Below, in pieces: positions 29,508 to 62,253 of a stretch of DNA of 64,000 nucleotides. The position numbers were made by a program, and so were the translations under genes. Under the pieces are notes generated by a model. That model had not been told where the DNA came from and searched no databases. It saw nothing but the letters and a program-made list of their open reading frames with translations. Numbering within the stretch: position 1 is the stretch's first letter; each line of letters begins with the position of its first letter. The DNA is from Epiperipatus broadwayi (Eukaryota; Animalia; Onychophora). Where the stretch lies: NCBI GenBank assembly GCA_028023455.1, contig JAQFVV010000005.1, forward strand, positions 11,594,001 through 11,658,000, given 5' to 3'.

Positions 29508-29552
29508 TGCCCGAGCGCTTTCAAGAGAACTTAGCTCTCATAATCATGGGCA
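29508..29552 (-). ncRNA. Variant minimal type I hammerhead (A3-U8 core) in Penelope 3' UTR
   Basis: UGCCC-AUGAUUAU-GAGAG-CUAAGUU-CUCUU-GAAA-GCGC-UC-GGGCA. Confidence 0.8.
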
Positions 29553-29632
29553 ACAAAGAATAAGCATAGCGTGTTGGTATATGCTAAAATATGCTGATAT
29601 ATGTAAATTAGTTGAAAATAAATGCGTCAGCT

Positions 29633-30397
29633 CTAAATGATCCACTTCTTAGAGATTTTGTAACACGCATCTTTCCTATTCATAGCCTTATCATCAATAG
29701 CAATAAAACATGCTTCTTTAACTTTTCTCTTAATGTCATTTCTCTCCCTGCAAACTATTCTTGCATTTTTAGGTTCACATGCATGACCAGCTGATTTCTG
29801 ATGTATAGCAAATATTGAGTTGCAATTTGGGTCTACTTGGGCCTTATTGTAAGAATATCTGTGCTGGGATAGTCTTGTAGAAAGAGTTGCTTTCGTTTCC
29901 CCATAGTATGATGCCATGCAGTTATTTTCTGGACATGAAATATTATATACGGCCTGAGAGGTGTTGTTGGGTGTTATAATGTCTTTGGTGTTATTAATAA
30001 TTCTATTTGTATTAGGGGGTGTATGAAAGCTTAATTGAAATTCTTTATTAAACACTGAGTAAAATTTTCGATGGGTAGTTGCAATATATGGTAACAAAAT
30101 TCTATTTTTCTGCTGCTTAATAACATTGCTGTTTAATTTACTATAAAATTGTCTAATCTTCCTATCAATTGTGTAATGCTTGAAGCCGAAATCTAATAAA
30201 TCGTTTCTATATAAGATTAAGTTTGCTCTTTTGTCCGATTCAAATCTGCAAAGTTGCTCATTCCTATGCAAGAAAGACGCTAAACCAGCTAATTTATGAA
30301 TAGAAGGCGTGTTTGAAGTGGGTTGAATATTGCCTCTTTTTTCTATTGGTTTTATAATCATTGTATAATTTAGTCTTTCAACCCACTTCAAACACAC
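29633..30397 (-). pseudogene. Penelope ORF C-terminal part (RT thumb/linker plus GIY-YIG endonuclease), 5'-truncated
   Basis: AVYNISCPENNCMASYYGETKATLSTRLSQH (GIY-YIG) and KRKVKEACFI (catalytic Glu region). RT core absent. Confidence 0.85.
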
Positions 30398-31071
30398 CTT
30401 CTATTCATAAATTAGCTGGTTTAGCGTCTTTCTTGCATAGGAATGAGCAACTTTGCAGATTTGAATCGGACAAAAGAGCAAACTTAATCTTATATAGAAA
30501 CGATTTATTAGATTTCGGCTTCAAGCATTACACAATTGATAGGAAGATTAGACAATTTTATAGTAAATTAAACAGCAATGTTATTAAGCAGCAGAAAAAT
30601 AGAATTTTGTTACCATATATTGCAACTACCCATCGAAAATTTTACTCAGTGTTTAATAAAGAATTTCAATTAAGCTTTTATACACCCCCTAATACAAATA
30701 GAATTATTAATAACACCAAAGACATTATAACACCCAACAACACCTCTCAGGCCGTATATAATATTTCATGTCCAGAAAATAACTGCATGGCATCATACTA
30801 TGGGGAAACGAAAGCAACTCTTTCTACAAGACTATCCCAGCACAGATATTCTTACAATAAGGCCCAAGTAGACCCAAATTGCAACTCAATATTTGCTATA
30901 CATCAGAAATCAGCTGGTCATGCATATGAACCTAAAAATGCAAGAATAGTTTGCAGAGAGAGAAATGACATTAAGAGAAAAGTTAAAGAAGCATGTTTTA
31001 TTGCTATTGATGATAAGGCTATGAATAGGAAAGATGTGTGTTACAAAATCTCTAAGAAGTGGATCATTTAG
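30377..31071 (+). pseudogene. Penelope ORF C-terminal part, inverted second copy
   Basis: Same peptide as the minus arm with H/Y, C/Y and A/V differences. Confidence 0.85.
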
Positions 31072-31151
31072 AGCTGACGCATTTATTTTCAACTAATTTA
31101 CATATATCAGCATATTTTAGCATATACCAACACGCTATGCTTATTCTTTGT

Positions 31152-31196
31152 TGCCCATGATTATGAGAGCTAAGTTCTCTTGAAAGCACTCGGGCA
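31152..31196 (+). ncRNA. Variant minimal type I hammerhead (A3-U8 core); loop III GCAC instead of GCGC
   Basis: Mirror copy of 29508-29552; G>A at 31188 breaks the palindromic loop III. Confidence 0.75.
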
Positions 31197-34100
31197 TTAT
31201 TCTTTAGATATTATAATTATTTTGAGTTTATAATATATTTTTATTTAATCCTGATGAAGCTCGGTTGTTGTGCGCGTATTTGCGCATTAAAATTATATAA
31301 TTAGTTGGCGCGATTTTTATTGTATGCCAAAATCTATCTTTTTATTGGTCAATTCCTACTTGGATTCTATAAACAATTTCTAAAGTTTAAAAATTGTGAC
31401 GTAATAGACTTAAATATTAACCTATTATTATTTTTAAATTAATTATTATCTATCACTATTTAATTACTTTTAAAATAATTTTGAAACAATAATTAATAAA
31501 GATGTATAATCTTATTTTTTTATTATAATGTGTGGCAATTCCATCCAGTTCCATAATATACTATTTAAATATTTTAATTATTTGTATTAATTTAAACTGG
31601 TGCTTATACATAAAATATTCCAGACAGTCACGTAGACATTTCCGGTGTTTAGTCTATTTTTATCTGTCTTAATAAATTTGCTACTTATATTATTTAAAAT
31701 GATTATATAAAATTTTGAAAAATAATTTAGAAAAATATAGAACTAGATGCAATCCCCACCATCACAATACTTATTATTAAATATATTACATTAACCCTTT
31801 ATTGCCTAACCATAGTTTATAATTTTAAATACTATATAATATTAATTTTAAAATTTTTTAGTAAATGACCATTTATAATCATAATTGACCTATAGAAAAG
31901 GGCACAATATATATTTAAAGAAAAGCTTACACTAAAAATATTTTTAATCTTAATTTTAAAATCGAGATTTAATATATTTGTTTTCAATAGGATGTGCTGA
32001 AGTTTTGAACATGAGTTATAAATTATTTACAATGCAAGATAACAAAATAGATTAGGTAGGTTATTAATTTCTTTACTATAAAGGGATTGGTGGTAGATCA
32101 TTTTTCAAATTTGTAACAAATTTCAAATAAGTTGCTGTCAGCATAATATTTTCAATAATGTGCATGAGATTCCTATGTACATATATATATACTTTAAAAA
32201 ATGAAGCTTACATTAAAAAGATTTTTAAAAGTTTATTAAAATTTAAATAAAAAGAAATCTTGATTTTTTTAAGTTTCCTCATTTAATGTAAAAAAAAATT
32301 TTCTTTTGTTTGCAAAACTTGATTTTGTTTTTCATGTAAACAAAAATATATTGTAAAGGACTTTTAATTACTTGATCTTATATTGAAATATTAAGCTGAC
32401 TTCAAATAACTGTACAAATACTGAAAATTAAAAAATAATATATATATATGTTTATAATTAATGCTTTTATTTACTGAATACTAAAAACTTTAAAAGTAAT
32501 TATTTCTTCAAACTTTGTTTAACTTGAAATAAAAGCATGGGGAAAATTAATTTAATCCCAATATTTTCTAACAAGAGATTGTTACATTTTCATTTACCAT
32601 TGTCAAACTTTCTCCACTCACAACTTTTGACGCCATCCATTTCAGATAAATACACTAATGATTATTACTAATCATTTTCGAAACTAGAGATTATCTCTAG
32701 CACAGATATAAACTTTAAACCTCAGTTAAAGATTAATATATCTGATTTTTTAAATTTACACACATGGAGTTATTCACCTTTCTCTGTCCCATATGTAATA
32801 TCTTTATAGAATATAACGAGATTGAAATACTTAATTTCTTAACACTCAGCTCCTATGCTTTTATTTCAAGTTAAATATAAAAAAAGCCAATTATTGTTGA
32901 AGAAAGAATTATTTTTAAAGTTTTTAATCCAGTAAATAAAATGTTTGTGATTAAAAAACTGATATTCATTTCTTGATCACTTATTAATTTCAGTAAATAA
33001 TCTATAACTGAACCCTCTTTTATTTTAGATTTTAGCTTTCTGTTTTATTAAAACCTTCTGCCTTTTTCTAAAGGTTGAAGTAATTACTTTATATAAAGCT
33101 ATATTGAATGTAAAAACATGAAGCATCTTTTTAAAATCTAATTTTAAAAGGCTATGAAATAAATCTTTTTGTTTGAAGTTTAGTAAATCATGTTTATGAG
33201 ATACAATATTCTTCTCACCATATGTCTTCTTTGTGCATAGTTAAAACTATGAAACAAATCTACCTATCTTTTATCATTATAACAATGCCTATTTTATTTT
33301 ATACTCCATCAATCTGACAGTTTTCATCTCACCACCATTCTTCTTCGGATCTAAAATAAATCAATAAATGTACATGAATTTATATATAAAAATAGTTGAT
33401 CTAAACAATAAAACCAACACTGAATAAATATATCCCAGTATAAATTGAATCCTTTTTATATCTTATGCTAAAGATAGTATGTCCTTCCAATTTTAATATA
33501 ATTTATTTTTTCTTATATTTGGTAAATATTTATGATATAATATAAAAAGGATTCCATTTATAAAGGAACTCGACATTTATTTAACATTGTTTATATTGAT
33601 TAGATAAACTATTCTTTATATATTCATGTATACTTATATATGTAATAAAAATAAAATGTTCATTGTTATTATATATATTAGTTCTGAAAATGAATGAATG
33701 CTGGTTAGTTGAAACTGTCAGATTGACTGATTGTAAAATAAAATGTCTTGTTAAAGTGATAAAAGATTATTAAATTACTTTTATTAGATTGACAATACAA
33801 TATTTTAAATAATACATCTCTGGTGTCTTTAAGTTTAATTAATTGTTACAATTTACACTGTTATCTTTATTTTCATGAGTCACTTTTTTTATTCATTAAT
33901 TTAACTATATGCTTTAACAAGAAGTATCATTTCAAGAGTTAAGACCCTCATCCCAATTAACACTTGTTACTCTCATTGCTCACACATCATAGGACATTTC
34001 CCTTGATGAATCGAATCAGTCACTTGAAAAAAAACAACTACAGTTCTTCACATAATTATAAACTATTGCATGACCTCTCTTAATTAAGTGAACTAATTTA

Positions 34101-36224
34101 CACAATTTGATAACATTTTATGTATAAATAGATTTTTTTACATCATTGTTTATTGAAATATACGTGGGAGAAATTTTCTATCTAAAAGTGATATTAATTG
34201 ATATTCTTTTGAATGAATGATATTCAAATGTTTAAAGTTGTTTTACTAAGTTTTGTTAAAGGTACAAATTGATAATATATTCCATACTAAATTATTGCTT
34301 ATAATTTGTCATTTTGAAAAATTCTCATCATGCATAAGTAAAAGTGCCTTGTATTAGCTTTTAAAGCCAGATGGTTTTATCAGTGTACAGTAAATTTTTA
34401 TTGAAAGAATTTTAATATTTTGGACATGAATTACATACAGATAAAGAAATACATCTACTAATAAATTAAGATATTAAAAAAATTATGTATAAATAAAAGA
34501 AAAATTAAGCGTTTACAATTAAACAAAGTGTAGTAATCAATGTTAAATAAAAATATGAGTTATTTTAGTAGATAGAAAAATATGAAAAATATTTTTATTT
34601 AAAAATAGCTAAAGGAAAAAAAAAACTGGATCGAAATTAATTAACTGTTTTTATCTTTGGATTAAATTATCAGTTTGAAATTATAGGTATGATTGCTTAA
34701 ATCTCATGCCTAAAATTAATACACAAATGACAGCTAAATTGATAAAGTTACACAGACACAGAAAGATGATGCTTTCAGTACGTTTATAGATATGAAAGGG
34801 TTAATATATTTTATAATAGTTTGGATTTGTTTTATTATGATATTTGTATACTTTCAAATGACCTGATCCTAAAAATATTTTAATCATTTAATACAAAATT
34901 ATATATTGAAACAGACACATTTCACATGTACAGTTTTGAAGTCCCCCCTCCCAATTTAAAAACTGTTGAGATTAAAAAAGTTCAAAAAATAAATAAGTAA
35001 GTGACAGCAATTTAGAATAAAATTTCATGTACATTATAAAACCCAAAATGGTTAAAAATTAAAAAGAAAAATCAATATTTTAAAATACTAAAATTACCAT
35101 TTTAAATGTAGTATTTTGTAAAAGTTTAATGTTTTCAGATTAAAAATAAGAAGGCTATAATTGACAATTAATTAAAAAGGATTGCTGTAGGCATGAAAGT
35201 TAATAGATATTTTTTGAAAACATGTCAGATGAAAGTTATCAGGATCTGTTCCCAACTAGTCAACAGCCAATAAGTAGTTGAATGAAGACATGGGCCTCAG
35301 AGAAAGATCATCTTCACCAATAGAATTAGTGCTAGATCAATCTGAAGAATAATTAATAAAAGCATTAGACAATAAATAAGGGAGTAGATACTGTTTAAGG
35401 CGATTCAATAATATATTGTTTGGAAGTGTCAAGACTATTACTAGTGGACTAACCATCATTAGTACTGCATAATGAAATGCAGTATATATGAATACTGGCC
35501 CAACGAAGCTTCGAGTTCTGTGACCATTAAGCAAAGAAGGAACTTATAACTACTAAAAAATGAAGAAACAAAGTATTAAAATGGAATCTTTTCAAATGTC
35601 TGGCTAAAAAGAAAACAGCTTTTCTCTCTCCTCTGTCACCTGGATTAGCAATGGAAGTAAGATGAAAATAAGATCTGTTAACTGATCATTGACTCCTAGC
35701 TCTCAAAAACTCTATTAGTTCGAAGATTTATGGAGAACCTCTAACAGATGAAGGTTCAGGTAAGGAAATTTATATGCATTTATAATATTAGAAAAGATTT
35801 TGTAAAAATGTTTATGGAAATAATGAAATGAATATAAAATGATACAAAATGAAAATATATTTATTCTAAACAGCTAATTTATAAACGGAACACACTGGAG
35901 TAATAGGAGAATATGAGTGTTATTAAAAGATAAAAGTGAAGATGCCAAAAACGATTTTGTTGATTTGAAAAAATAATTCTATAATAAACTTCATACTTGT
36001 AAGTGTCTACATAAAATGAAATTATTAATTATAAAGTGATATTTATTACTTTATAAAATGCTGTGATAGAGTGAATTAACATGAATCTACACACACATAA
36101 ATTAAAGAAATGTTTGTAACATGAATTAAGAAATTATAGAGTAAAAATTGATATATTATATACATGAATAATAATGAATATGTACCTATATATCTGAATA
36201 CATAATAGATGTGAATTAAGTTGT

Positions 36225-36836
36225 AAAGTAAATACTTCTAAATAAGTAATTTAAACTCATGTCTGGATAATATGATAAATAAGAATAAAATATTCCCATA
36301 TAAGTGACTCAAAACTGCATCTATATAATGTGTAAAATGAAATACTTCTAAATAAGGGGTTCAAACCCACATCTGGATAATATGTTAAATAAAAATAAAA
36401 TACTCCTATATAAGTGACTCAAAACCGCATCTATATAATATGTAAAATGAAATAGTCCTAAATAAGTGATTTAAACCCACATCTGTATAATATGTGGATT
36501 AAAATTAAATGCTTCTGTATACCTGGATGAAATCAAATGTTTCTATGACCATGGATTAAAATTAAATGTTCTTATATACCTTGATGAAATCAAATGCTTG
36601 TATGACTACAGATTAAAATTAAATGCTTGTTTACACCTGGATGAAATCAAATGCTTCTATAACCATGGATTAAAATTAAATGCTTTACATACCTGGATGA
36701 AATGAAATGCTTCTATGATCCTGGATTAAAATTAAATGCTTGTATATACCTGAATGAAATCAAATGCTTCTATGACCATGGATTAAAATTAAATGCTTCT
36801 ACATACCTGGATGAAATCAAATGCTTCTATACACAT
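36225..36836. repeat. Compound minisatellite: ~2.5 x 110-bp units followed by 6 x 57-bp units
   Basis: AATACTTCTA/AATAGTCCTA at 36231, 36341, 36451. 57-mer starts at 36496, 36553, 36610, 36667, 36723 (56 bp after the previous) and 36780. Confidence 0.9.
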
Positions 36837-37721
36837 GGATATATATCTACACGCATAATGAAACTTCAATCAAGAAGGATAACTCCCAATCATGGAGGAT
36901 CAAAGAGGAGAACTGTGATATAGATACAGATAGGATGGCAGCCAGGGTAGAGACTGTCAATAAACTTTTTCTTATTCTTTTTAAGAACTTAGTACCCAAA
37001 TATCATTATTGTTAAATAAATTATGGTTACAAAAAGCTAATACCTCAAGTCCATTTCAATTTGCATCACTCATCAATTAGGGCACTAGTTCATAAGAATC
37101 TCATGTCACCTGAGCTGTGTCTGGAATAACTCAATGTGGGTAAGTAAGGTTGTGGTGAGATGGAACTTTAATGGTGCTGTTTGGGAAACCAAACACATAA
37201 ATTTCTAGATGTTTCCAGTATCTATGGCACTACATCTTCTGATGAGCAGGAACTATTGTTGTAGGGGGATGACATCAGCATTGGGGAATGCCAATTGATA
37301 GTTTCTGCAATATGCTTATCAGGAAATAAAATCAACCAAGAGAGAGAGGGGTTGGTTGGCCATCAGGTTACAATATATATATATATATATTAATGTTTGT
37401 AATATGTATATAATAATTTTGAGAACAGTTGTGTGTAGGGTTTATTCATTCGTGGTGCTCTCATTCTAATTTTTAAGTTTCATACTTTTTATTAAAAAAT
37501 CAAAAAAAAATAGCAAAACATGAAAATAACATGTTTACAAAAGAAACTTGAAAAAAAAAAAAAAAGCAAAACAATCAGTGATTAAAAAAAAAAAGAATTT
37601 TAATATGTTTGATCATTGCAAACAATTGTAAGAAATTAATGAGGAAAGTAAATGTATTTCCAAAATAAGAATAGAATCGATGTGTAATTTGAGTATAAGT
37701 AATGATGGACAACCTAACTAT

Positions 37722-38074
37722 ATATCACATGATCACCGTTTCCTATACTTACACAAGCTGTTAAAACAATAACAAACTCTCCATACAGTAGATGACTATA
37801 CAAGTGAATTAGCTTGGATTGACAACATTATCATGTTTTAATTTGGACTTGTAGCTTTATAGTTAACTAAAAGGATAAAAGATGGCTAGTGGAGGCTTGC
37901 ATTAGATCTTAGGATCTAGGTGTTCAGATCCAAGGCGCTTCATGATGAAAGCCATAAGCTAGAAACTTGTCTGGGGATAATGGATGAGTAGGCACTAGAT
38001 AGGGATTTTATGCATAAATCTTGCATCCATTGATTACTAAGGCTTGCACTGGATAGCATCACTGTATGGAGAGT
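37722..38074. mobile_element. Retrozyme-like family 1 insertion (short minus arm plus longer plus arm) with a degenerate hammerhead at 37928-37985
   Basis: Aligns to 9760-10010. Hammerhead lacks C3: UGAUGA-AAGC-CAUAA-GCUA-GAAA-CUUG-UC-UGGGGA. Confidence 0.75.
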
Positions 38075-40439
38075 CTAACCATTAGTCCATAAGAAAATAC
38101 TTGATGACAATATATTTTTTAAGAAAATAAAATCCAAAAGGTATTAGAATCATTGTAGATATCATAAGTAGCACACATAGGTGAAAATCACATTTAGATC
38201 AAAACATGTATGAAGTTGCTGATGAGGACAAATTCATAAATTAAAAAAAAAAAACTATGAAAATTTGTACATATTGTTAGTTTTTTCTGACTTTCGAATA
38301 TGTGGATTTTTTTCAAAACTCTTAACATTTCTTATATTAAAAACTGTTTGCATGCATATTATTTTTCTGTTCATCAGAATGTATTCTCTTCCATATAGGA
38401 TATTGACACAGTTCACAATAATTTAAGTTTGATTGAAGTGTTTAAAAGAAACATTGCTTTAAAAATCATTATTCTTTAACATTTTCAATTTTTTAGCAAT
38501 GCTTATATGCTTTTCTTTTATTTTATTTAGGTTGGAAATAATTCACTCTTGATCACTGGTGACTATTTTTTTAAAGAAAGTGAAGCTCATGCTGTATTAT
38601 AATGCCCTAATTAAATCGCTAATTGTGATTGTTATAAATAAAGTCATTCACAAATTGTCAACTAAAGATATTAACCATATTTAGATCATACTTTACAAAA
38701 TAAAACTGACAAAAACATGAATATACTATTGACTTGGTAATCCTTATGGATTACATAATCACCATTATATGGAGAAAGTGTATTTTTTTAATGTTAATTA
38801 ATTGAAATGATTAGCAAAAGTATTACATCTAAATTAATAAAGTTAGTTGTAATTCAGAGATAATTTTGATTTTTTTGAAAAAAAACAACAACAAAATCAT
38901 AAACTTCTCTGAGATATTATTTTTCAATATAATAACAATTACTCTCAAAATCAATATAAAGTGCTACCACACAGAAATTGGCAATATAAAGTTTCTCCTC
39001 GGAACTGATAATATAATAATCACAGTGTTAATATAATGTTCTATCACAAAGAAGTGTTATATTTTATTTCTACAAAAAATTAACATTGAAAATAATAAAT
39101 ATAATTTGAATGTAAATTCTTAAATGGTATACAACTTTAATGAATGAGATATAGTTGTTGGGAGAAATGGTTGATGATTCATTATGTGACTGTCAATTGT
39201 TATAAATTACATATGTACAATAAGGAGAGTTAACTGGAAGTTAAGTATTTTTTGTTCAGTAATAAGTGATATAGTAAAGGAAGTAAACAAATAAGCTCTA
39301 TTATATGTACATAATAAGGATTTTTGAAGTTTTAATCCATCCATGTAAATGACAAGATTAAAAGGTATCATTGGAGAAATGGAATAAAAAGCAACAATTC
39401 CTACAAGAAGACAATGAATAAGCTTATAACAATCATGGAAGTCTGGATTAGCTATTATTGTAATTTTATTGAAGTCTTACTGCCACTTGTCACTATTATC
39501 TATTGACTGAAAATTTAGAATATTGATCTTATGTCTTACATGGTTTGCACTTTCTGTAAATAATAGGATTATTTTTCTTTTTGCATTGAATGGTTTAATT
39601 TCTGAGAATCCATCCAATGCAAAAGTATTACATAAAAACACTTAATAATTACTAGATAATATTTACTTCCGATTGTTTTATTTTTTGTAACCTAAAAAGA
39701 AATGATTTTTTAAAGTTATTACTTTAATTTATTTGATAAATGTAAATTTAATATTTCTAGATCCTTCTTCATTGTAAATGGCAGTAAACTTTAAATAATC
39801 AACATTCAATGACAAAGAGTCAATTATAAATTAAAAATACTTTTAGTTAACATGATAGTGAATTTTTTATTGAAGGTAAATATTACTTAAAAAGTCATTT
39901 GGTTTGTCTTTAGACAAATCGTAGGTTTAAAGAAATACATAAATTTATTTAAAAAATTTGCATGGAAACAGTGTCTCTATTAAATTATTTAAAAATTATT
40001 AGTTAGGACGAGGACATAATATAGTTTTAAAAAATGTACAAATATCAAGTCAAAATATTGTATGAAAAAGAGAAAATGCTGGTAATGCTTGAAGAATTAA
40101 TTGCCTCTCTGAAGATGATCATGCTAGGCTGAGAATAAAAACCGTCATACAATTAAAAGTTAAAGGCAGGTTTAATCATGATTATGAATCTCATTAAATC
40201 ATAAATATACACATTTTCATCATTTACTAATTATTTTTTTAATTATACACAAGGAAAAAATCCAATAGATCTTTATAAGGAGAAGAAGGTTGCCTTAAAA
40301 TATTTCATCAATTAATAAATTTGTCAATTAAAAGTAGGGATTATTTACTTTTTAATGTTTCTTTAAATGAATAAAATATTTATCCAAATCAAAAAATATA
40401 TGAATTTAAAGCTGTGGAAACAAATTAAAATTTCATAAA

Positions 40440-42359
40440 ATGATTTTCTCTGAAGAAAACAGTTTCAAATGTAGATTATGTAATTACAAAACAGAAATAA
40501 AATCTCAATTAAAGTTTCATGGAAGAGTACATAAAGATGATAAACCATTTCAGTGTTCCTTATGTGATTACAAGACTGCTGTGAAACATCAGTTAAATGA
40601 TCATGAAAAAATCCACACAGGAGAAAAACCTTTCCAGTGTACTTTATGTGATTACAAGACTGCCACAAAAAGTAACCTAAATATGCATTTAAAAGCACAT
40701 ACTGAAGAAAAACCATTTCATTGTAAGTTATGTGATTACAAAACTGTTCACAAATTTAGTTTAAAAGTACATGAAACCCTTCATACAGGTGACAAACCTT
40801 TCTATTGTCGTATATGTGATTATAAGAGTGCCACAAAAACTTATTTAAAAATACACGAAAAAACACATAGACAAGAAAATTTTTTTAATTGTACTTCATG
40901 TAATTACAAGACTACTATAAAAAGTAGTATACTCAGACATGAAAAAATACACACTGGAGAAAAACCATTCCATTGCAGCTTTTGCAATTATAAAAGTGCT
41001 GAGAAAGGTACATTAAAAGTACATCAAAGATTACATACAGGAGAGAAACCTTTCCAGTGTTCCATATGTGATTATAAGACTGCTACAAAAAGTTGTATTA
41101 ATAGACATGAAATAGCACATACTGGAGAAAAGCCTTTCCTCTGTAATTTATGTAATTTTCAAACTGCTGAGAAAAGTAGACTAAAAGTACATCTATCTAA
41201 ACATACAGGAGAAAAACCTTTTCATTGTAAATTATGTGATTACAAGACTGCAATGAAAAGTACTTTAAAAAGACATGAAAAAACTCACATTGGAGTAAAA
41301 CCTTTCCACTGCAGCCTCTGCAGTTTTAAAACTGCTGAGAAAAGTAGATTAATTATTCATCAAACAAGGCATACAGGAGAAAAATGTTTTCAATGTATCT
41401 TATGCAATTATAAGACTGCTCTTAAAAGTAGATTAAATTTTCATGTAAAAACACATACTGGTGAAAATTTTTTAAAATGTAGTTTATGTGATTATAAAAC
41501 TGCCCAAAAATCTAATTTAAAAGTGCATGAATCAATGCATACAGAAGAAGAACCATTTCATTGCAACATATGTGATTACAAAAGCGCCTCAAAGTATTAT
41601 CTAAAAAGGCATGAAGCAATACATAAAGAAAAGTATTTGCAATGTATCTTATGTAATTATAAAACTGCAGTTAAAAGTAGATTACATAGTCATGAAAAAA
41701 TACATAGTGGAGAAAAACCTTTCCATTGCAATCTCTGCAGTTTTAAAACTGCTGAGGAAAGGAGATTAAAAATTCATCAAACAATACATACAGGAGAAAA
41801 ACCTTTTCAGTGCTCTTTATGTGATTACAAGACTGCTGTTAAGAGCAGGTTAAATTTTCATGAAAAAACACATACTACAAAAAAATATTTTCAATACAGA
41901 GTAACTGCTCGAGATTGTTATAAAGATAAACTTTTTTCTTGCAGCTTATGTGATTACAAGAATGCAACAAAAAAGTATTTAAAAGTTCATGAAAAAATGC
42001 ATTCACGGGAAAATTTTTTTCATTGTAATTTATGTAACTACAAAACTGTTATCAGAAGTAATTTTAAGAGGCATGAAGGAACACATATTGGCAAGAAAGC
42101 TTTCCAGTGCAGTATGTGTGATTATAAATCAGCTTCTCGAAGTAATTTAGTAAATCACCAAAAATATTCACATTTGAAAAATTCTCTGATATTTTATCAA
42201 AATAAGGAAAAAAACTATATTCTGAACCTGCCTTATAATATTGAAATTTTTAAATGTCATTTGTGTGATTACAAAAGCTCAGATAAAACTTTTTGGGAAA
42301 GTCATGAAGCAAGTCATTTTATAGATCTTGTTACAATTGAGATTCTTGTTCAATTATAA
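40440..42359 (+). CDS. Poly-C2H2 zinc-finger protein, 639 aa, 21 fingers
   Basis: 17 tandem fingers, a spacer, 3 fingers and one C-terminal finger; all Cys/His ligands intact; TGEKPF linkers. Confidence 0.95.
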   Translation: MIFSEENSFKCRLCNYKTEIKSQLKFHGRVHKDDKPFQCSLCDYKTAVKHQLNDHEKIHTGEKPFQCTLCDYKTATKSNLNMHLKAHTEEKPFHCKLCDYKTVHKFSLKVHETLHTGDKPFYCRICDYKSATKTYLKIHEKTHRQENFFNCTSCNYKTTIKSSILRHEKIHTGEKPFHCSFCNYKSAEKGTLKVHQRLHTGEKPFQCSICDYKTATKSCINRHEIAHTGEKPFLCNLCNFQTAEKSRLKVHLSKHTGEKPFHCKLCDYKTAMKSTLKRHEKTHIGVKPFHCSLCSFKTAEKSRLIIHQTRHTGEKCFQCILCNYKTALKSRLNFHVKTHTGENFLKCSLCDYKTAQKSNLKVHESMHTEEEPFHCNICDYKSASKYYLKRHEAIHKEKYLQCILCNYKTAVKSRLHSHEKIHSGEKPFHCNLCSFKTAEERRLKIHQTIHTGEKPFQCSLCDYKTAVKSRLNFHEKTHTTKKYFQYRVTARDCYKDKLFSCSLCDYKNATKKYLKVHEKMHSRENFFHCNLCNYKTVIRSNFKRHEGTHIGKKAFQCSMCDYKSASRSNLVNHQKYSHLKNSLIFYQNKEKNYILNLPYNIEIFKCHLCDYKSSDKTFWESHEASHFIDLVTIEILVQL

Positions 42360-42971: not shown

Positions 42972-43657
42972 ATGCGACTTTTTTTGTTTGCATTAAATAG
43001 TGAAGTTAGAATTTTACACTATTTTATAATAGGTTTGCTTAGCGCTTTCGAGATTTCATGTTCGAATCTCATACTCATAGCTTTGTAAATAAAGATTGTT
43101 ATGATTTATGCAAATGCGTTTGAATTTTTAATTAATCCATTGTTTAGAGAGAGCAAAACATGTCTCTCTTCTATTAATGACATTGATGTCATTTGCTATA
43201 TATAAAGCTTCCTTAACTTTTCTTTTGGCATCATTTTTTTCTGTACAAATTATTTGGGCAGAACTAGATTCAAATACATGGCCCGTAGCTGCTTGGTGGT
43301 CCCAGAATACTGAAGACCCTTCATTTTTATTTTTAACCCTATTGTAGATGTACCTATGTTGGTAAATTCTTGTGTTCAGGTTAGCTTGAGTCTCACATAG
43401 TATGATGCATGGCAGCCTAATTGAGGGCATGCCATTTTATAGACCACATGAGGGGCTTGATCTTTTTCTGTTTTATCTTTTAAATTATTTATCAGTCGGT
43501 TAGTATTGGGAGGTGTTCTGAAGCTAAATTTAAAATTGTTAGACAATGTTTTTGCAATATTTGGTGTTACATTAGACATAAAAGGAATTGTTAGGTATTT
43601 CATATTGTCTTTAAGCAATATTTATAATTACAATTTTATTAGTGAAGAGAAAAATAA
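42972..43657 (-). mobile_element. 5'-truncated Penelope-like element (second family), frameshifted GIY-YIG, 17-bp TSD
   Basis: VVYKMACPQLGCHASYY / ETQANLNTRIYQH split by a 1-nt deletion near 43397. TTTATATAATT(A/G)TAAAT at 42955-42971 and 43658-43674; empty site at 2751-2767. Confidence 0.9.
43037..43081 (-). ncRNA. Variant minimal type I hammerhead (A3-U8 core) in Penelope 3' UTR
   Basis: GCU-AUGAGUAU-GAGAUU-CGAACAUGA-AAUCUC-GAAA-GCGC-UA-AGC. Confidence 0.8.
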
Positions 43658-49043: not shown

Positions 49044-50412
49044 AATTAATAAAACGTTTTAATTTTGTATACACTATATATATTTATACAGGTTGTGCGC
49101 ACATCTATATATGTGTTTGTTTTTCAGATTTCAACATGTATATATTGTAACTGTACAAAATGTACAGCTGACTCGCAAATCACCCAAGGGCAATTTACAT
49201 GGATCTCCACATTTTTGCTAAGATCAGGATACATGAGATTCTCTATCATTAATTGCAAAATGACAAATGCTAAAAATAAAGAGACACCACAATTTATTCA
49301 CGTATATACAATTTTACAATACATACATGATAGCATAAATTCACTGCCCTATCAATTTTTAAAACAATTTGATATGATTAAGGACTGATTAACTTTATGC
49401 ACAGATAATATAGTATAATACATTCTTAATTGTTACTGAACAGAGATGAACTTGCTGCATGGACAAATGATTACAACTAATTATTTAAGATTTAATAAAT
49501 GTACAGTTTGAAAATACATTGAATTTATTAGCTATTTAAAGAATCAGACTACTATGAATACTTTCAGGCTATAAACAACACTATATGTGCAAATATAAAA
49601 TGCAAGAAAACAACATCTGCGTTACATTAGCTAGGAATACGCTATAAGATAGCAATTGACCAGGAGTCTTAAATGCTATCCGAGACCAGTACAAAAAAAA
49701 CAAAGCAGATAGCATATGGTAGGAATGTTCATCTATGGAACACCACTGCTCTAAGTAAGATAATGACTACAAATGAACAGCAACGATTTATGAATAATTG
49801 TAACATATACAAACGAATCTTATATATAAATAAGCCAGTCCAAAATAAAGTTACAGCAGTTCATTTACATCAATACGCCTTCAGATTATCCTTTCTCAAA
49901 CCTGGAGGATATTTTGCTTAAAACTGTAAACCATTAAAAGATAATAAAAAAAACCAATTTTAATTTATTCTATCTACACAGCCTCTTTAATTTTTGGAAG
50001 GTTGGAATTACTGGTTTTAAAATATGAGTATGGCCGGAGATTGCGATAATAAACTAATTACTCTATCAAAATTTACTCTTATGTTATACACTGATTGAAT
50101 TGTGATATTATTAAATAAGATAACAGGACAATTTATTGTCATACTAGTTGATAAGCAGATTTATAAAATCCATAATATGGTAAGGAACTTGCTGTTAACT
50201 GAAAAGAGAGCCTTTGATTTTTCTTGGAGGCCTTAAAGAAACCAAGCAGGGCAAACTAAAGTCCACTCCTTAGGTTATTGTCATTGCAGCTGTTATTACT
50301 ATGTGATTATTCATATAGTATACAAAGATAGAGGCTGCTTTCCAACATGCATTAACCAGTGTGGTGAGTTTATTGACAGAATAAATGTATTTTGAATAAA
50401 AAATTTCTAATA

Positions 50413-53300: not shown

Positions 53301-53322
53301 AATGATTATAATAGTATGTACA

Positions 53323-54830
53323 CTTAAGATAGATGTAATTAGAGGGGATTTGAACCCAGACATTCAAGCTCTCTTCAATTATCTATTCTATCTTATACAA
53401 TCGATGCACATGGCCACATTTATTTGAAAAAGTTAAATGACATCCAGTATAAATATTTTGTGCTGAACCAGAACTCATCAGTTAGTCCAGATCATCTCCC
53501 ACACATATGTATAATCAGTGCTCAGTTCATATTAAGATAGGAAATCTTCAAACTTTAATGAACAGGCTTCAATCCTCTCCATTTTTCAGCCATCCATATC
53601 ATTGAAAACCTGATGATGGCATGTTCAAATCCCTTGTTTTTCCAGCTTTGATGTCATATATGTCGATCAGAAGTCAATATGACCCCTCCCATGTAGGACC
53701 TTAAGACCATTTTAAATACACAAGAGATGGGCAGCATATAGGCTGCATTTATAATATTTAAATCCAAGTCTAGGATATATTCTTAAGATAGATGTAATTT
53801 GAATCCAGACTTTCAAGCTTCCTTCTGCTGTCCATTCTATCTTATACAACCAATACACATACCTTATACAATATATGTTTTTCATGCTGAATTAGCATTC
53901 ATCCATTGGTCAGGATCATCATCATCCACATATATGTAACCATATTTAGATAGGTAAATCTCAAACTTTAATTGACAGGCTTCTATCTTTTCCACTCTCA
54001 AACTCTTCAGCCATCCATATCATTGAAAATCTGATGCTGCATGTGAAGGGTCAAATTGACTTACTGTGAACATGGGTATAAAGTTGGTAAAACAAGGGAT
54101 TTGAACATGCTGTCAGCAGATTTTCAATGACATGGATGGCTGAAAAGTGTAGAAGATTGAAACTTGTCCATTTGAAGATTTGCTGACTTAATATAAACTG
54201 AGCACTGATTATATATATATATGGGAGATGATCTCAATACCAACTGATGAGTGCAGGTTCAGCATGAAAAATATATATAGGTCATTTATCTTTTACAAAT
54301 GTATGTAGTCATGTATATTGGTTTTATAAGATAGAGTGGATGACAGAAGGGAGCTTGAAAGTCTATGTTCAAATCCCCTCTATTAACATCTATCTTAAGA
54401 ATATATACTAGTATTTAAATATTTACAAATTCAGCCTATATGTTGCCCATCCTTTTTCGGTGGGTTTAAAATGGTCTTAAGGCCCTGCATGTGAGTGATC
54501 AGATTGACCTACAGTCATCATGGGTATGACAACAAAGTTGGCAAAACAAGGGATTTGAACATCAGATTTTCAATGATATGGATGGTTGAAGAGTTATAGA
54601 GTGGAGAAGATTGAAGTTGTCCATTAAAGTTTGAATTTTTATCTTAATGTAAACCAAGCATTGATTATATATGTGTATGGGAGATGAAGATCTGGACCAA
54701 CTGATGAGCACTGGTTGAGCATGAAATTTCATATAATGGAGATCATCTTTTTCAAATGTATGTGTATCAGTTAAAAGATGAAATAGATGACTGAAGGGGC
54801 TTAAAAGCCTGGGTTCAAATTTTGTCTAAG
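53323..54830. mobile_element. Retrozyme-like family 2: ~1.6 minus-sense monomers head-to-head with ~1.7 plus-sense monomers (monomer ~425-460 nt)
   Basis: CTTAAGATAGATGTAATT at 53323 and 53782. Inverted units start at 54039 and 54487. One hammerhead core per monomer at 53475-81 (-), 53899-905 (-), 54244-50 (+) and 54701-07 (+). Confidence 0.75.
54222..54290 (+). ncRNA. Type I hammerhead motif, family 2 (best-preserved copy)
   Basis: ACCAA-CUGAUGA-GUGC-AGGUUCA-GCAU-GAAA-AAUAUA-UA-UAGGU. Core complete; stem I has one mismatch. Confidence 0.65.
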
Positions 54831-55243
54831 ATCAATAATAATTCATAAAGAATTTTCAGTATAATGAAGATAAATATGTAATGTTAGTAATTGAATAATA
54901 TTTTTTAAAGTCCATACCCATTCCCTTTCATCACTAAGAGTTCAAGCTCGGATGTCAGGTATTGGTATACTTTGATTAGACTTTGTCCAACAATATCTAT
55001 AGTGGTAGTAGGCTTTAATCAGAATGGTCTGAACTCAACTGGCAGAACTGGACAGTAGTTTATTAAATAGGAGCTGATTTCTCCCAATGACAGTAAACAC
55101 TTGAAGTTTAGATATATAATGGACAAATGCTGTTTCTACATTTGCTGACAGTTCCTGCCAACTGGCAAGATTAAAGTAGATTATGGCTTTTTTATTCTTC
55201 CATTGTAATTTTCAATACCAAACATAATAAGTACATTGAAGGC

Positions 55244-55343
55244 GTCAAGCGCTGGTGGCCGAGTGATCAACACAGCTGTCTTACAGGCAGCTGTCCTGGG
55301 TTTTCAGGTTTGCTTCACTGCCGATGCTTTGACATATGAAAAA
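55244..55343 (+). mobile_element. 100-bp tRNA-derived mini-SINE or retroposed tRNA-like sequence with A-tail and 15-bp TSD
   Basis: A-box-like TGGCCGAGTGA, anticodon-arm-like GCTG...CAGC, degenerate B-box GGGTT, A5 tail. AAGTACATTGAAGGC at 55229-55243 and 55344-55358. Confidence 0.7.
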
Positions 55344-58300
55344 AAGTACATTGAAGGCACAATCTAGAACTAAAAAACAGCAGTAATGATTCAGCAATAT
55401 CTTTTAGCAATAAGCAATAAAAGTAAATTGAGCACAATGATTTATAATCCCCATTTATAGTTCCTGGAGATAAGTTAGCTTTTCAGAAAAAGTGTTCATC
55501 AGCTGTCACTTCAATTCTTTGTTCTATTGGTAGTAGATAATTCTTCAACTTTGTTTAGTCCATGGCTTATTTATCCAATCAAGATACAAAATTTTATCAT
55601 TGAAACATCAAATATTTATCTCATTTAATCGATCTGTTTATGAGAATTTTAATTACATTTGGTAAGATAATGCCATTTCCACTTTATAATTATAAATCTG
55701 TGTATATAAATTGTATATATAATTTTTATTTATTAAAATTGTTGAAAATATTTACTTTTAAAATCAACTTCTAATTTTTAAATTATAGACATGAAGCACT
55801 TCAATATTTATATGCACACATCTAAAATAAAAATGTGTAAAAATGCATTTTACAGTGTAATCAGTTGTCCATTTATAATCTATACTGCAATTTGAAAACA
55901 AATGTCTTGATAAACTATTGCATTCCTATTATTAGATGTTGTTAAGTAGACAAACTGTAATAAAGATATAAATAGAATTTTGCATTAATCATAAAATTTT
56001 AAACATATAAGAATAATTTTTCTTATTCAGTTGGAAATAATGGCACTGTGTTAATCTATTATTGACAACATTCTATGTCAACATTGATCAATATTCATAT
56101 TAATAATAGGGCAATTAATAGAATAGACAAAACATATAGAATAAATCGAGGTGAAATAAAAAGCAACAAATGTAAAAACAGATGCAAACCTTTCTTGAGA
56201 TTTTTTTAAGATGAAAATATGAGATTCTATGTATTTCAATGTAAAACTGAAGTTGTTTTCAATATGTAAGAAAGAATACACATCCTTATGGCATTTCACT
56301 TTCCCAAATTGTTACTTTTGAATTAATATCTCACAAAATATTCTGTATGTATTATATAATGAAATAATACATTATTTTTTAATTTATTCCATTGTAATTA
56401 TTTCATTTTGTGTCGGACTTATTTCTGAAAATTATTTTTCAATATGTTACTGCTTTTCATCCTCAACTACTATTTAAAATGTGGAACATGAGACTTCTAA
56501 TTTTCAATGAAGTAGGTAATTTTATTATTATGTCCAAACACATTGTTTCTATAAAAGGCATATTTTCAAGATGGCTAAGCAGTTTATTTAATTAAACAAA
56601 GAAAAAAAAATTATAATTCTGACAGTAATTTAATATGAAGTTGTTTCCAGAAAAATATAGAATAAAATAAAAATGTGTTACCAACTTTGTATTAACATCA
56701 ACCCTCAGTAGCTCAAAAATATACATATAATAAACTTAGGTGAACTAGAGCTGCATGAATAATCTTTAATGAAGCAGTATATTACTAGTATCATGACTTT
56801 TTCTAGTTCTTCATCTCTCTTGATTTTTTTTTCTTCTTTTAAAATGTTACTTTTTTAATTTCTTACTCTCTGGAGTATTAAATTGATATCAAATTAATGT
56901 ATATCAATTTTATGAATTGCCATATTATTTAATTCTCTGCTTTTTAAAAATAATTTGATCATTAAGTACTGTCTTGTTTTCTAATGATAGTTTAATTAAT
57001 ATGATTTTTTTCTAATGTAACTAATAATAATATTTAGTTTATAGCAATCTTCTCCACTACTGCAAAAGATTAGAAATTCCTTTTTTCATTCATTTAAACA
57101 AATTATTTACATTATTGTGATCTTCTAAATCTTCTACTCTTCATTATTTCTTTTGCCTAGCTTTTTAGATGCTTGTTATCTTCTAGTCTGTTTCTGTCTC
57201 CTCTTTTTCAATTTTTATTAATTCTTTTTTTTTTGGGGGGGGGGATATCTCTTGCCTAGTGGACTCTATAAGCTGAATTTTTGTTTTGATTTTTTTCTCT
57301 TTTGCCTTCTACATAAACTTGTCCAATTTCATCTAGTGCATCATTTTCTATTTGTGAGTTTAATGTTATTTCATTGATTTCATTTATGATTTCTATGCTT
57401 TCAGTATCTACAATTATCTTCTGTCTATATGGCAAACAGTTGTCTGTTACAGATTACCACTAATCAGTCTTTTACATGTTTTCTTGTATATCACCACTAA
57501 GTGCAATAATTTTTTTAAACATCACTTTGATTTAAACTATGTTGTGTTAGTATTGTTATATAAAGTTTCATGTATTACATACAGTTTCATTGGCATCTAC
57601 CGCACTAGATTTTTTTAAATATTTTATTTAAAGCATTTGATTTCCCTTTCTTCTAGTTCAATCGATTCTGTATAGTATGATGGATACTTTGAAACAATTT
57701 TTAATCAATCATTTTTGAAATACTGTAATAAATAAAAATTTCTCTGTTTTAAGACTTTTAATGTGACCTGGCAGGTCTTATTATTTTGTATTCTATAAAA
57801 TATGAATACAAATCATCATCTAAATGTTATTCTTTGCTATGATTTTGATCTTTTAACTATAAACTACTATTTTAGATACATTATTGTTACTTTGACTATT
57901 CTCATATTTTTTATTATATCTTTGGTTAACACCTATTTTACCACATAAAAGCACTATCCAAAATAAGTATATGTCAATTCTAAAATCCTATTTAATTTTA
58001 TTGTTTCAATGACTCTATCATTTATTATTATATATCCTTTAGCATAAATTTTCTTTCCATTGCTTAAAAAAAATGCAATTTTTTTTAGATATTTAGAAAA
58101 CCAAAACACTTCAGATCCATTCTATAATTGTCGATAGTCTTACTTTTTTTTTATTTATATAACCAATATAATTTCTCTTCAGGGCACAGCTCTAAACTGA
58201 AAGCATTTGCCAAAAAGATATTGCATGTAATATTTTACTTCTGTTTTCATACTTGAATTCCATAAATATATTCTGATAAAATACTGTGCTAAGTAGTTTA

Positions 58301-61136
58301 TGATTAATGTGTTCTAGAATCGACTTGGATGATTCCAGTTATGACTAATAAAGGTGTATGATCTATAATAGTGTATAGATGAAATATATTCTGAATATTA
58401 TAGTCACAGTTTCATTTCCAATTGGCTAGTTTTGTTTGAACTATGGTAACGACTTTGAAGCATAGACTTATTTTTTGTACTCAGATGGAAATTGTCTCAG
58501 AACTACTCCTAATCTGTATCGCAAAGCCTCTCTTTTGCTATATAGTTAATACAATTTTTTATGGCAGATCTGTTATTTACATTATTGTACATATTTCTAA
58601 AAATATCCGCTAAAGTAATATTTTTACACTAGAGGTCGCGTTATATTTTGATTCTATGGAATGGAAAAAAAAGCTTCGCTTAATTAATTAAACAGCTCTC
58701 AAATTGCTCAAAATAAATCAAAAGTACTATATAGAGTAAATATCTTTTAGAATTTAGGTAAGATTCTACTTCCTATCTTTTTTATACTGGTATGTACATA
58801 TCTTTACTTCTTGCACAAATAATGTGATATATTTGCTGGTAATATAGTACGTTGATATTGTATAATTTTAAATGTATTATTAATTGGAGGACATTGCTTT
58901 ATTTAATACATATAATACTAAACTAAGTTAACGTTTGTGATTTATATTGCATGAAAAACTGATGTTGTCGATAAAAATTCTCAGCCTACATAAATAAAAA
59001 ATACTGTGTTAGTTTTTAAATCAGCTTGGTTTATCAATGTATCAGTAAACTTTTCAAAATGATTTTAGTCTAAGCCTATTGATGTGTGATAAATATACAG
59101 TAAATACTTTATAAGTAAATAAAACATTTAATGTGATAAGTATAATAAGTAAAGTTTTTTTTTTTCTTAAAAAAAAAAAAGCTTATCTGTGACACACGAA
59201 AAAATAAAACTTACAATGTGTTTAAAAAATAAATAAAATTTAGTTTTTTAAAAAGTCTATTTTATTGCATAAAATAAAAGAATATTGATATTTAAATGAA
59301 AAAAGAAAATCAATTGGCTTCAAAGTAATTAACTATTTCTGTATTTTGATTAAATTGTGGCTGTTGTTATGTGATTTGATTATTTTATAGCTATTCAAAT
59401 AAAACATTAACTATAATGGGACTATTGATAGAAATATTATACTGCCATGGAAAGAAAAATGAAGGAAACTATTAAAGTCTTGTCAAAGATAGTGTTAAAT
59501 GATTAATATAATTTTTTTGGTAGATCGGATTGGCTTTATTATGATTTTGCAGACTTTTGAGGAAATTTCTAAAATAATTATAATAACATTAATAGAAAAT
59601 TAAAAGTATATGTTAATTATTTATGTTTGTAATATTTATATTATAATTTTTTTAAAAAACAATAAATATAGTCAAGCTCATGTATACCTTCCTTATTTAT
59701 TTCTAGAAAAAAATATAATGAATAGTAAATATAGAACAATAATACTATGCAGTTATATAGCAGGAAATAAAACTCATGCAGTTGAGAAAATCAGAATAAT
59801 AATTCTAATATTGAGACATTACATAATAGGCGTCACTCAATCTAGAGAAACGAAACTTAAGCAAGAAAACATTAAGTCAAACAAATACTTCAGAATTTAA
59901 TAATATGAATAAGGTCAGAGAATTTCTGATTTATAGATGACATGTAAAGAAGAAAAAAAGGACAAGTAAAGGGTAGTGGCATATCTTTGTTTAGCTAGAA
60001 TTTTAAAGGTTATAAATAATATTTTCATCACATCTCTATGCAACCATAGAGATATGAAGAAAAAAAATGTTACTGAATTAGCAATGAGTAAGCCAGAGTC
60101 ATATGATACAAATAAAATGTATGGTCCACATAGTCCCCAGGAGTGTTCATATGAGGAAATAATATAAATCAAACAATTATTTTAGTTATTTACTATAATA
60201 TATAATACACTGAATTTGAGATACAGGTGGCAAAACAAAAAAATAATTGGATTGAAACCATGTACTCTGTGGTTTATCTAAGTAATGCTTTACCAAAATT
60301 TTCTAGAAAATGTATATATAAATCAGATATTAGTAGAAATAATAGAGTGAACTCTGACAGCAGTTCTTAGTTAAATATAATGTGATGCATAAAAAATATA
60401 ATATAATGTATAAAGGGATCAGCTTACATGTTAGTGGTGGACCGCACCAAGAAGTTTCAAGCAAATTTTTCAGAAAATTCATGACAGTCAAAGAAATGTG
60501 GAAAATTAGAATATATATGTATATAAAGTTATTTTGTTGTGAAAAATTAAGAGCATGTTGCTTATAAATGTAAATAGATGAACTTTATCTGTTACAGTTA
60601 TAATTATAAGAACATTAAGAGAAAGCCTATAAAGAGATGAGATCTATATAATTTAGAAATATCAAAAATGATAGATAAAAATATCAAATTATTAGATACA
60701 GAATGATTTGAAGTTAAGTGAGCATTTTCTAGTTTTTTTATATACACAGTATATGGGAAATTAAAACTAGGCATGAACTAATTAACAGTTCTAGTATCAA
60801 GAAAAAGTAGAGATGGACTACATATAAAGAATATAAAATTATTAGCTAAAGGTGGAAACCGAACAAACTACACATATCAAAGATTGTTAGGATATAGCCA
60901 AGCTAAACAATAAAAATAGATATGTTTAATAAACACTCATTTCATTTCAATATTAGAAAGATAATGGTTTACAAATGTAAGCCTCAAATTCAGGAATAAC
61001 TAAAAATTGGTAAAGAATGAAATACTAGAGAAATTTGTCAATTTATTCAAAGGATTTAGGAGTGATAAATATAAAAACCAAGATAAAGGTGGCAAAATTG
61101 ATCATTTGTAAGCTCTCCATTTACATACAATAAAAG

Positions 61137-61542
61137 GTACAGAGGCAAAACTCTCCATACAGCAGCTTCACTCAATGCAATCCAGAGTAATTCATGGATG
61201 CAGGAAGGTTTTGCATAAAATCCCTATCTAGGGCCTACTCATCCAATATACTCAGACTAGTTTCTAGCTTATGGATTTCATCATTGAAGAGCTTTGGATC
61301 TGACAGAATTGTATCTAAATCTTAGGCTTTAATGCAACCCTCCACTGATGAAAGCCATAATCTATAAACTAGTCTGGGGATTTTGGATGAGTAGGCACTA
61401 GATAGGAAATTATGCGCAAACTTTTCCTGCATCCATTGATTACTCTGGCTTGCACTGACTGGTGTTGCTGTATGGAGAGTTTTGCCCCTGTGTTAACAAT
61501 TTGTGTAGACATAAAGAATGATGATCATATGATGTTTAATGG
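61137..61542. mobile_element. Retrozyme-like family 1 insertion (head-to-head) with two degenerate hammerheads at 61241-61299 (-) and 61342-61388 (+), 11-bp TSD
   Basis: TACAATAAAAG at 61126-61136 and 61543-61553. Removing the insert restores Gypsy ...HTIKDVVKQ. Confidence 0.8.
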
Positions 61543-61934
61543 TACAATAAAAGATGTGGTGAAACAGACTGTATGAATAATGGTAAAAGATAAAATATTC
61601 TCTCTGACAGAAAATATCAGGTTATATTGGTGATTCCTAAATCAGATAGTGAGATGTGTTTATGTGATGACTATAAATTAGTAAATTGAAATATTAAGAA
61701 CTATTTTAATTTTGTTGCAAACATAAAAGTAGTTTTGACTTTGTTAGAAAATTATTCCTTTTTTTTTTATTAAAGTAGATGTAAAAATTGCTTTTCTTCA
61801 AATTTCAGTGAATGAGAAAATGACAACTTAGGCAAGAGACTTTAGAAAGTCCCTAATCTTTTTCAGAGCAAGATGGACACACTATTGAGAGAAATGTCAG
61901 CATAAGTTTTTTATTACAACACCATATTAATTAC

Positions 61935-62253
61935 AGCTATTTAGAAAATGGTATAAATCAAAAAATAATCTAAAAACATTAATATACAAATTAAAAAGCA
62001 TGTGAAGCGCTTGAACGAGAAGCTATAAAGATTCAACAAATTATTATACGTTAAGCGCTTTCGAGGCCATTTGCCTCATATTCATAGTGGTAATGCGAGG
62101 TGCAGAACAGGGTAATAAGGCAAGGAAATAAAAGAGTTATGCAAAACATATGCAAATGAATTAGATAGTCCAACGTTTTGAAATGTCAGAACAGGTGTCT
62201 CGTCTAGATAAATTGAATGGGATTAAGATGTATATCCAAAACTCAGGAAATAC
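61935..62253 (-). mobile_element. Short 3' fragment of a third Penelope-like family inserted in the Gypsy RT
   Basis: Minus-strand NLSRRDTCSDISKRWTI* matches the INRRETCFALSKQWIN and MNRKDACYKISKKWII* ends of the other two families. AATTAC at 61929-34 and 62254-59. Confidence 0.75.
62050..62088 (-). ncRNA. Variant hammerhead (A3-U8 core), stem I degraded
   Basis: ACU-AUGAAUAU-GAGGC-AAAUG-GCCUC-GAAA-GCGC-UU-AAC. Confidence 0.65.

Follow-up and report, generated by a model that had tools for sequence, protein, structure and literature searches.

The window analysed here is a stretch of 64,000 nucleotides (64 kb) from the onychophoran Epiperipatus broadwayi (GenBank assembly GCA_028023455.1, contig JAQFVV010000005.1, positions 11,594,001 to 11,658,000 of the forward strand), and it carries four copies of a short RNA motif, each located 47–85 nt 3′ of the stop codon of a 5′-truncated reverse transcriptase (RT)/GIY-YIG open reading frame (ORF) of a Penelope-like element (PLE). 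By anatomy and context these motifs belong to the minimal type I hammerhead ribozyme class (min-HHR) of PLEs and are putatively catalytic, and they depart from the class consensus in having A3 and U8 in the core instead of C3 and G8. The features at the locus are as follows, with positions counted from the first letter of the window.

29509..29551, minus strand: copy 1, minimal hammerhead, predicted cleavage 3′ of C29513
31153..31195, plus strand: copy 2, hammerhead, inverted duplicate of copy 1
43037..43081, minus strand: copy 3, hammerhead, predicted cleavage 3′ of A43040
62052..62086, minus strand: copy 4, hammerhead core, stem I of 1 bp
29405..30327, minus strand: arm 1 of a head-to-head double insertion, PLE 3′ end with hammerhead and ~104-nt tail
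29633-30397, minus strand: ORF of arm 1, 254 aa, thumb/linker and GIY-YIG endonuclease (EN), followed by an 81-nt untranslated region (UTR)
30377..31299, plus strand: arm 2, 99% complementary to arm 1, with ORF 30361-31071
43128..43618, minus strand: ORF remnant of copy 3, GIY-YIG C-terminus in two frames (43128-43430 and 43376-43618), ~160 codons
62161..62217, minus strand: ORF tail of copy 4, ~18 codons ending in ..NLSRRDTCSDISKRWTI*, alignable to the ends of the copy 1 and copy 3 ORFs

The reading frames upstream of the motifs encode a product with the GIY...YIG endonuclease signature. An exhaustive HMMER search with the product of copy 1 gave 1,161 protein matches at E<=0.001, and the best relatives, which are 27–30% identical to it, are fragments or full-length proteins with RVT_1 and a weak GIY-YIG domain, that is, Penelope-like elements; a word-indexed protein search with the 254-aa ORF of copy 1 gave no match. 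Every copy in the window is the 5′-truncated 3′ end of an element (tblastn), and nothing recognisable was found upstream of the ORF tail of copy 4. The two arms form a 923-nt inverted repeat, 99% identical and separated by a spacer of 49 nt, and head-to-head inverted insertion of this kind has been reported as a PLE footprint (PMC8557442). As parts of a single inverted repeat, copies 1 and 2 count as one observation, thus leaving three independent instances; the four copies of which a preliminary description of this DNA had spoken reduce to these three, and the fourth copy is without a proper stem I. The endonucleases of copies 3 and 1 share 48% amino-acid identity over 87 aa, which bears out the earlier statement that the motif is conserved across divergent PLE families.

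Both strands of the whole window were searched with the pattern ATGANTATN{10,40}GAAAGCRCT. The composite ATGANTAT-N(10-40)-GAAAGCRCT matched four times, at 29514-29547 (−), 31157-31190 (+), 43041-43078 (−) and 62054-62085 (−), compared with 0.00 matches in 100 dinucleotide shuffles. The octamer ATGANTAT by itself occurs 41 times, close to the 37.8 expected by chance, and thus the signal resides in the composite motif. The composite proposed in the preliminary description, AUGA(U/G/A)UAU followed by stem II, GAAA and GC(G/A)C, is confirmed in all four copies, and its spacing from the ORF stop agrees with the positions found here; the motif of copy 1 also lies where it had been placed, except that the span 29552-29508 was one base off at each end.

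The metazoan PLE min-HHR described by Cervera and De la Peña (2014) consists of a short helix I, a CUGANGA core, an unpaired nucleotide between 9 and 10.1, a G10.1-C11.1 pair closing a long helix II (5–8 bp), GAAA, and a palindromic 15.x-16.x segment in place of a real helix III, which lets two PLE motifs make a double hammerhead (PMC4209133). We divided the copies into parts by reading the sequence together with a structural parse by script, which was chosen over a covariance model after MAFFT misaligned copy 4. The parts are given below in the order stem I 5′ strand, core 3–9, extra nucleotide, stem II 5′ strand, loop II, stem II 3′ strand, 12–14, helix III, H17 and stem I 3′ strand.

Copy 1: UGCCC - AUGAUUA - U - GAGAG - CUAAGUU - CUCUU - GAA - AGCGCU - C - GGGCA
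Copy 3: GCU - AUGAGUA - U - GAGAUU - CGAACAUGA - AAUCUC - GAA - AGCGCU - A - AGC
Copy 4: U - AUGAAUA - U - GAGGC - AAAUG - GCCUC - GAA - AGCGCU - U - A

Copy 2 is the same as copy 1 apart from its helix III segment, AGCACU. Positions 3 and 8 pair with each other in the active hammerhead structure; all four copies have A3 and U8, which does not match C3 and G8 of the CUGANGA consensus, and a Watson–Crick A-U pair is possible there in each copy. U4, G5, A6, A9, G12, A13, A14, the pair A15.1-U16.1 and a non-G at 17 are likewise present in all four, as is an unpaired U between A9 and G10.1. The palindrome AGCGCU occupies 15.x-16.x in copies 1, 3 and 4 and makes no stable helix III. Within the core only N7 (U/G/A) and H17 (C/A/U) vary. 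Helix II is 5–6 bp long, and the pair at 10.1-11.1 is G-C in copies 3 and 4 and G-U in copies 1 and 2; stem II had been said to differ in sequence and yet to pair, and this holds in every copy. Stem I of copy 1 is GCCC/GGGC, or 5 bp when the flanking U-A is counted, so that its length is 5 bp in copies 1 and 2, 3 bp in copy 3 and 1 bp in copy 4, compared with ~4–5 bp in the published class. Copy 4 has probably decayed, because its stem I is only 1 bp; the covariation described for stem I is seen between copies 1 and 3 (GCCC/GGGC and GCU/AGC). The extra U after A9 had been called non-canonical, which is mistaken, since an extra base at this place is a published conserved trait of PLE hammerheads (PMC4209133) and is also present in three relatives described below (A in L001 and L008, U in L012). 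In other respects the core parse and the PLE location support the Penelope-type minimal type I hammerhead with an A-U pair at 3-8 that was put forward in the preliminary description, and by these comparisons the copies represent three independent, well-diverged PLE lineages, with the A-U state common to all.

For the analysis of conservation, copies 1, 3 and 4 were aligned with MAFFT together with 100–150 nt of flank on each side. Invariant columns made up 23 of 47 in the motif and 57 of 205 in the flanks (Fisher p = 0.0085), and the variable columns of the motif were confined to helix I, distal helix II, loop II, N7 and H17, which are the positions that a hammerhead tolerates. Although the UTRs can barely be aligned, the copies agree at 21 of the 22 positions in the core, at the stem base and in helix III. 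Pairs 4 and 5 of stem II changed on both sides (A-U/A-U/G-C and G-C/U-A/C-G in copies 1/3/4), and helix I is wholly different between copies 1 and 3 with its pairing retained. When the identity of the 3-8 pair was left free in the descriptor, only A-U motifs were found at strict settings, 2 versus 0.13 per shuffle. RNAcofold predicted a double hammerhead as the minimum-energy dimer of copy 1 (−37.1 versus 2 × −13.9 kcal/mol), with helix I formed in trans and helix III formed by AGCGCU/AGCGCU, and the double-hammerhead topology was also that of minimum energy for copy 3 with its flanks.

The Rfam hammerhead families (type I, II and III, HH9 and HH10) gave no match to the whole window or to a 101-nt stretch, either at the gathering threshold or at E<=10. 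The canonical PLE min-HHR of L001, used as a control, gave no Rfam match at E<=10 either, thus the blank result says nothing about the core variant; Rfam 15 has no model that captures the PLE hammerheads without helix III. The earlier claim that CUGANGA searches miss the A3-U8 motif is supported, and Rfam misses it as well. In a wider scan with the variant pattern, no match was found in viral contigs, and the only match in the metagenome scan was rejected as chance, being located inside a bacterial ORF with its ‘stem II’ unpaired.

Assembled Logan contigs were used for mapping to public sequencing runs, and such contigs carry no information on the ends of molecules. The PLE family is present in several runs with at least two organism labels, and two of these runs are RNA-labelled. 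In the RNA-labelled data, contigs of diverged copies can be aligned over 29508-29551, with alignments breaking at 29507/8 and 29550/1, and in run X8 a depth of 24–30 across the motif drops to 0 in the UTR next to it. Such a pattern fits a motif that is more constrained than its flanks and says nothing on cleavage. A reading of some contigs as unrelated flanks sharing the motif alone was rejected, since one or more of these flanks turned out to derive from this UTR in diverged form; the contigs show no more than a motif that can still be aligned where its flanks cannot. Contigs of run X7 show, in addition to a change at 29541 that is taken up below, several more T>C/A>G differences near this position, which could be diverged copies or possibly editing, two cases that contigs do not separate.

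We consider it probable, on the strength of this sequence evidence, that the motifs are minimal hammerheads in the pseudo-long terminal repeat (pLTR)/3′-UTR of PLEs, one lineage of which swapped C3-G8 for A3-U8 and kept the new pair while its families diverged. The only two departures from the PLE min-HHR consensus are mutual pairing partners that changed in a complementary way, as selection for a catalytic fold predicts. Catalytic activity would be the most likely reading of this anatomy, and we hold it with fair confidence; a role in the processing of PLE transcripts is what we infer from it. In the mechanism that we propose, two motifs, either from the tandem pLTRs of one transcript or from two transcripts, would pair through AGCGCU into a 6-bp helix III, stem I would then be made in trans, and the result would be a double hammerhead. 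The A3-U8 pair would place the ribose of residue 8, whose 2′-OH would act as general acid with G12 as general base, as has been proposed (PMC6155905), and the chain would be cut 3′ of H17, which is C29513 in copy 1 and A43040 in copy 3. By analogy with other PLE hammerheads, this cleavage would probably be weak when unaided and would be helped by the protein of the element.

Several observations weigh against an active ribozyme of this kind. The three independent instances share one common ancestral A-U state, and among them there is no covariation at 3-8. In copy 1 the pair G10.1-U11.1 takes the place of G-C, the palindrome of copy 2 is broken (AGCACU), stem I is nearly missing in copy 4, and five contigs of run X7, which is RNA-labelled and has the second organism label, carry 29541 T>C (plus strand), that is, A9-to-G. 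Purine-3/pyrimidine-8 was reportedly found by Przybilski and Hammann in 2007 to be less favoured in at least one ribozyme context. Moreover, published PLE min-HHRs are poor cleavers in vitro (PMC4209133), and in the Anolis element PAc hammerhead cleavage required the protein of the element, and insertion in vitro did not depend on this cleavage (PMC11167929).

To the main rival to catalysis we give a minor but real chance: the RNA would be derived from a hammerhead, catalytically dead, and retained for another job of the PLE, such as dimerisation through AGCGCU, recognition by RT/EN, a promoter in the pLTR, or a structural role at the DNA level. Invariance is as strict in the palindrome and at the base of stem II as among the catalytic residues, which suits this explanation, as does the proliferation of Naiad and Chlamys PLEs without hammerheads (PMC8557442); in addition, target-primed reverse transcription of a PLE proceeded in vitro without hammerhead cleavage, and RNA-seq showed no ends at the cut site in Anolis (PMC11167929). 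However, the invariant G5, A6, G12, A13, A14 and non-G17 serve catalysis and not a plain hairpin or kissing palindrome, and the exact complementarity of the two core changes is expected from selection on the catalytic fold. A decaying relic is very improbable. In that case A-U would represent two neutral mutations of dead copies in a genome rich in A+T, and the apparent conservation would reflect recent common ancestry; all copies in the window are indeed 5′-truncated, degradation is seen in copies 3 and 4, the genome is very rich in A+T (27% G+C), and the independent instances number only three. But AT pressure would give C-to-T and G-to-A, whereas C-to-A and G-to-U are transversions; the identity at 21 of 22 positions is seen between families that differ by ~50% in protein and have barely alignable UTRs; and the youngest copy, with its 99% identical arms and open 254-aa frame, has the best stems. 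A wrong register (e.g. ..UUAUGA as 4–9) or another RNA class is scarcely credible, because although AUGANUAUGAG includes AUGAG, the last five bases of CUGAUGAG, and there is no Rfam hammerhead match, the Rfam blank is uninformative given that canonical L001 is blank too, and the AUG would be left unexplained and stem I detached, whereas the A3-U8 register violates nothing beyond the paired swap. The UUAUGA register was itself rejected because it demands G5-to-U, and we know of no hammerhead in which that change is not lethal.

Other features of the window stand beside the A3-U8 motifs. CUGAUGA/CUGACGA ... GAAA motifs with ACUAGU-like palindromes are present in non-coding repeats at 9322-9352 (−), 9887-9916 (+), 12803-12832 (−), 54244-54279 (+) and 54701-54735 (+), and Rfam scores none of the five; thus canonical C3-G8 hammerheads and the A3-U8 PLE lineage coexist in the window. 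In the stretch from the stop codon to the hammerhead, both copy 3 and copy 4 have the octamer ATTTGCAT within (C)GCATTTGCATA, at 43108-43115 (−) and 62150-62157 (−), and the corresponding stretch of copy 1 (29560-29630, −) has GCATTTAT and ATTTACAT instead; the ATTTGCAT box may serve the terminal repeat as a conserved promoter element or as a site for protein binding. About 80 nt 3′ of the hammerhead, near the 3′ end of the insertion, a sense-strand hairpin GUGCGC-GUAUUU-GCGCAU is possible at 29417-29434, with its mirror near 31270-31287, and it recalls the stem-loop of the Anolis PLE where reverse transcription begins (PMC11167929). An intact 639-aa ORF at 40440-42359 (+) with tandem C2H2 zinc fingers (16 double-domain matches) lies ~700 nt from copy 3 on the opposite strand. 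Near-perfect long hairpins at 61212-61416 (+) and 6598-6722 (both strands) scored well below gathering against plant microRNA-precursor models (MIR7533 with E = 2e-10, and mir-5014), and are most likely foldback or miniature inverted-repeat transposable element (MITE)-type repeats and not microRNA genes.

Three hammerheads of related PLEs allow a comparison part by part. L001:1650-1691 has CUGAGGA+A, an 8-bp helix II and AUAU, with C3-G8. L012:229-267 / L013 comes from the 5′ repeat of an intact PLE (879 aa) and combines CUGAAGA+U with a helix II of 6 bp and ACGU, again with C3-G8. L008:902-942 (+), on a marine metagenome contig, reads GAGA GUGAUCA A GAUGGCG GGU CGUCAUC GAA AUAU U UCUU, with 7 bp in helix II, 4 bp in helix I and the palindrome AUAU; its pair is G3-C8, and it looks like a natural purine-3/pyrimidine-8 core from another organism. 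No hammerhead was recognisable within the short 3′ flanks of L004/L005, L006/L007, L009, L010 and L011. On L002, a scaffold of GCA_000715545.1, UUGAGGA ... GAAAUC occurs three times, at 9033 (−), 20391 (+) and 20498 (−), adjoining a PLE-like gene model, and this motif, with U3 opposite G8 and a wobble-rich stem II, may be a decayed or wobble-paired core. The architecture of L001, L012 and L008 resembles that of the window copies throughout, down to the extra base (A or U) that follows A9 and the palindromic helix III (AUAU or ACGU), whereas their proteins are only 27–30% identical to that of copy 1 and their 3-8 pairs are C-G or G-C and not A-U. They also differ in placement, because in L001 (1653) and L008 the stop codon UGA of the ORF doubles as U4-G5-A6, whereas the window motifs stand 47–85 nt past the stop. 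Across the six PLE motifs compared, the 3-8 states are thus C-G, G-C and A-U, and since C3-G8 and G3-C8 are found in a shared architecture, 3-8 covaries among PLE hammerheads.

Variation at 3-8 is not new in itself, as the preliminary description had rightly cautioned. Natural U3-A8 occurs in several hammerheads of Perreault et al. (2011, PMC3088659), who state that in vitro activity of 3-8 covariants had already been demonstrated; U3-A8 is also found in ~1,300 Cercyon PLE hammerheads of Schistosoma mansoni (PMC4209133), and the C3G/G8C double mutant gives partial rescue of a PLE hammerhead (Frangieh et al. 2024, PMC11167929). A full-text search of the open-access literature, a corpus that leaves key subscription papers outside, found no natural A3-U8 hammerhead. 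Hence the ribozyme class, the dimer mode, the association with PLEs, the additional base that follows A9 and covariation at 3-8 in general are already published, and the sole distinctive trait is the A3-U8 pair, which three diverged families of one PLE lineage have retained and which is a modest new sequence variant. With L008 included, PLE min-HHRs may naturally sample all four Watson–Crick pairs at 3-8, namely C-G and U-A (published), A-U (here) and G-C (L008), in which case A3-U8 and G3-C8 would be the first natural purine-3/pyrimidine-8 cores; we offer this tentatively and with some doubt.

The interest of the motif is moderate and comes from the flipped purine/pyrimidine orientation at 3-8 and from its invisibility to standard descriptors. 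Hammerhead censuses and PLE annotation use descriptors that fix C3 and G8, or allow U3-A8 at most, thus the A3-U8 lineage is invisible to them and to Rfam, and its elements would be scored as having no hammerhead. If A3-U8 and G3-C8 cores are active, current CUGANGA/UUGANAA descriptors would undercount hammerheads in PLE-rich genomes, and nature would show that only the geometry of 3-8 and the ribose of residue 8 matter, and not the identity of the bases. According to one structural model, all that the 3-8 pair does is to position the 2′-OH of residue 8, and conservation of a purine-3/pyrimidine-8 core would put this model to a natural test.

Among known systems, the viroid and satellite hammerheads also have a single extra base between A9 and G10.1, unpaired where the 5′ strand of stem II begins, according to De la Peña and Flores (2001) as cited in PMC4209133, but they are type III motifs of plant circular RNAs and not of retrotransposons. 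The published PLE min-HHRs agree with the window copies in their location in a terminal repeat or UTR, a stem I that is short (1–5 bp here), the long stem II, the unpaired 9/10.1 base, G10.1-C11.1, the palindromic 15.x-16.x segment, the NUH cleavage site and the predicted double-hammerhead dimer, and differ in having C-G at 3-8 where A-U is found here, and in the G10.1-U11.1 pair of copy 1. The U3-A8 covariants likewise show a natural compensatory swap of C3-G8 in a PLE context with an otherwise standard core, and are missed by CUGANGA descriptors. However, U3-A8 keeps pyrimidine-3/purine-8 and is reached by two transitions, whereas A3-U8 reverses this orientation and is reached by two transversions.

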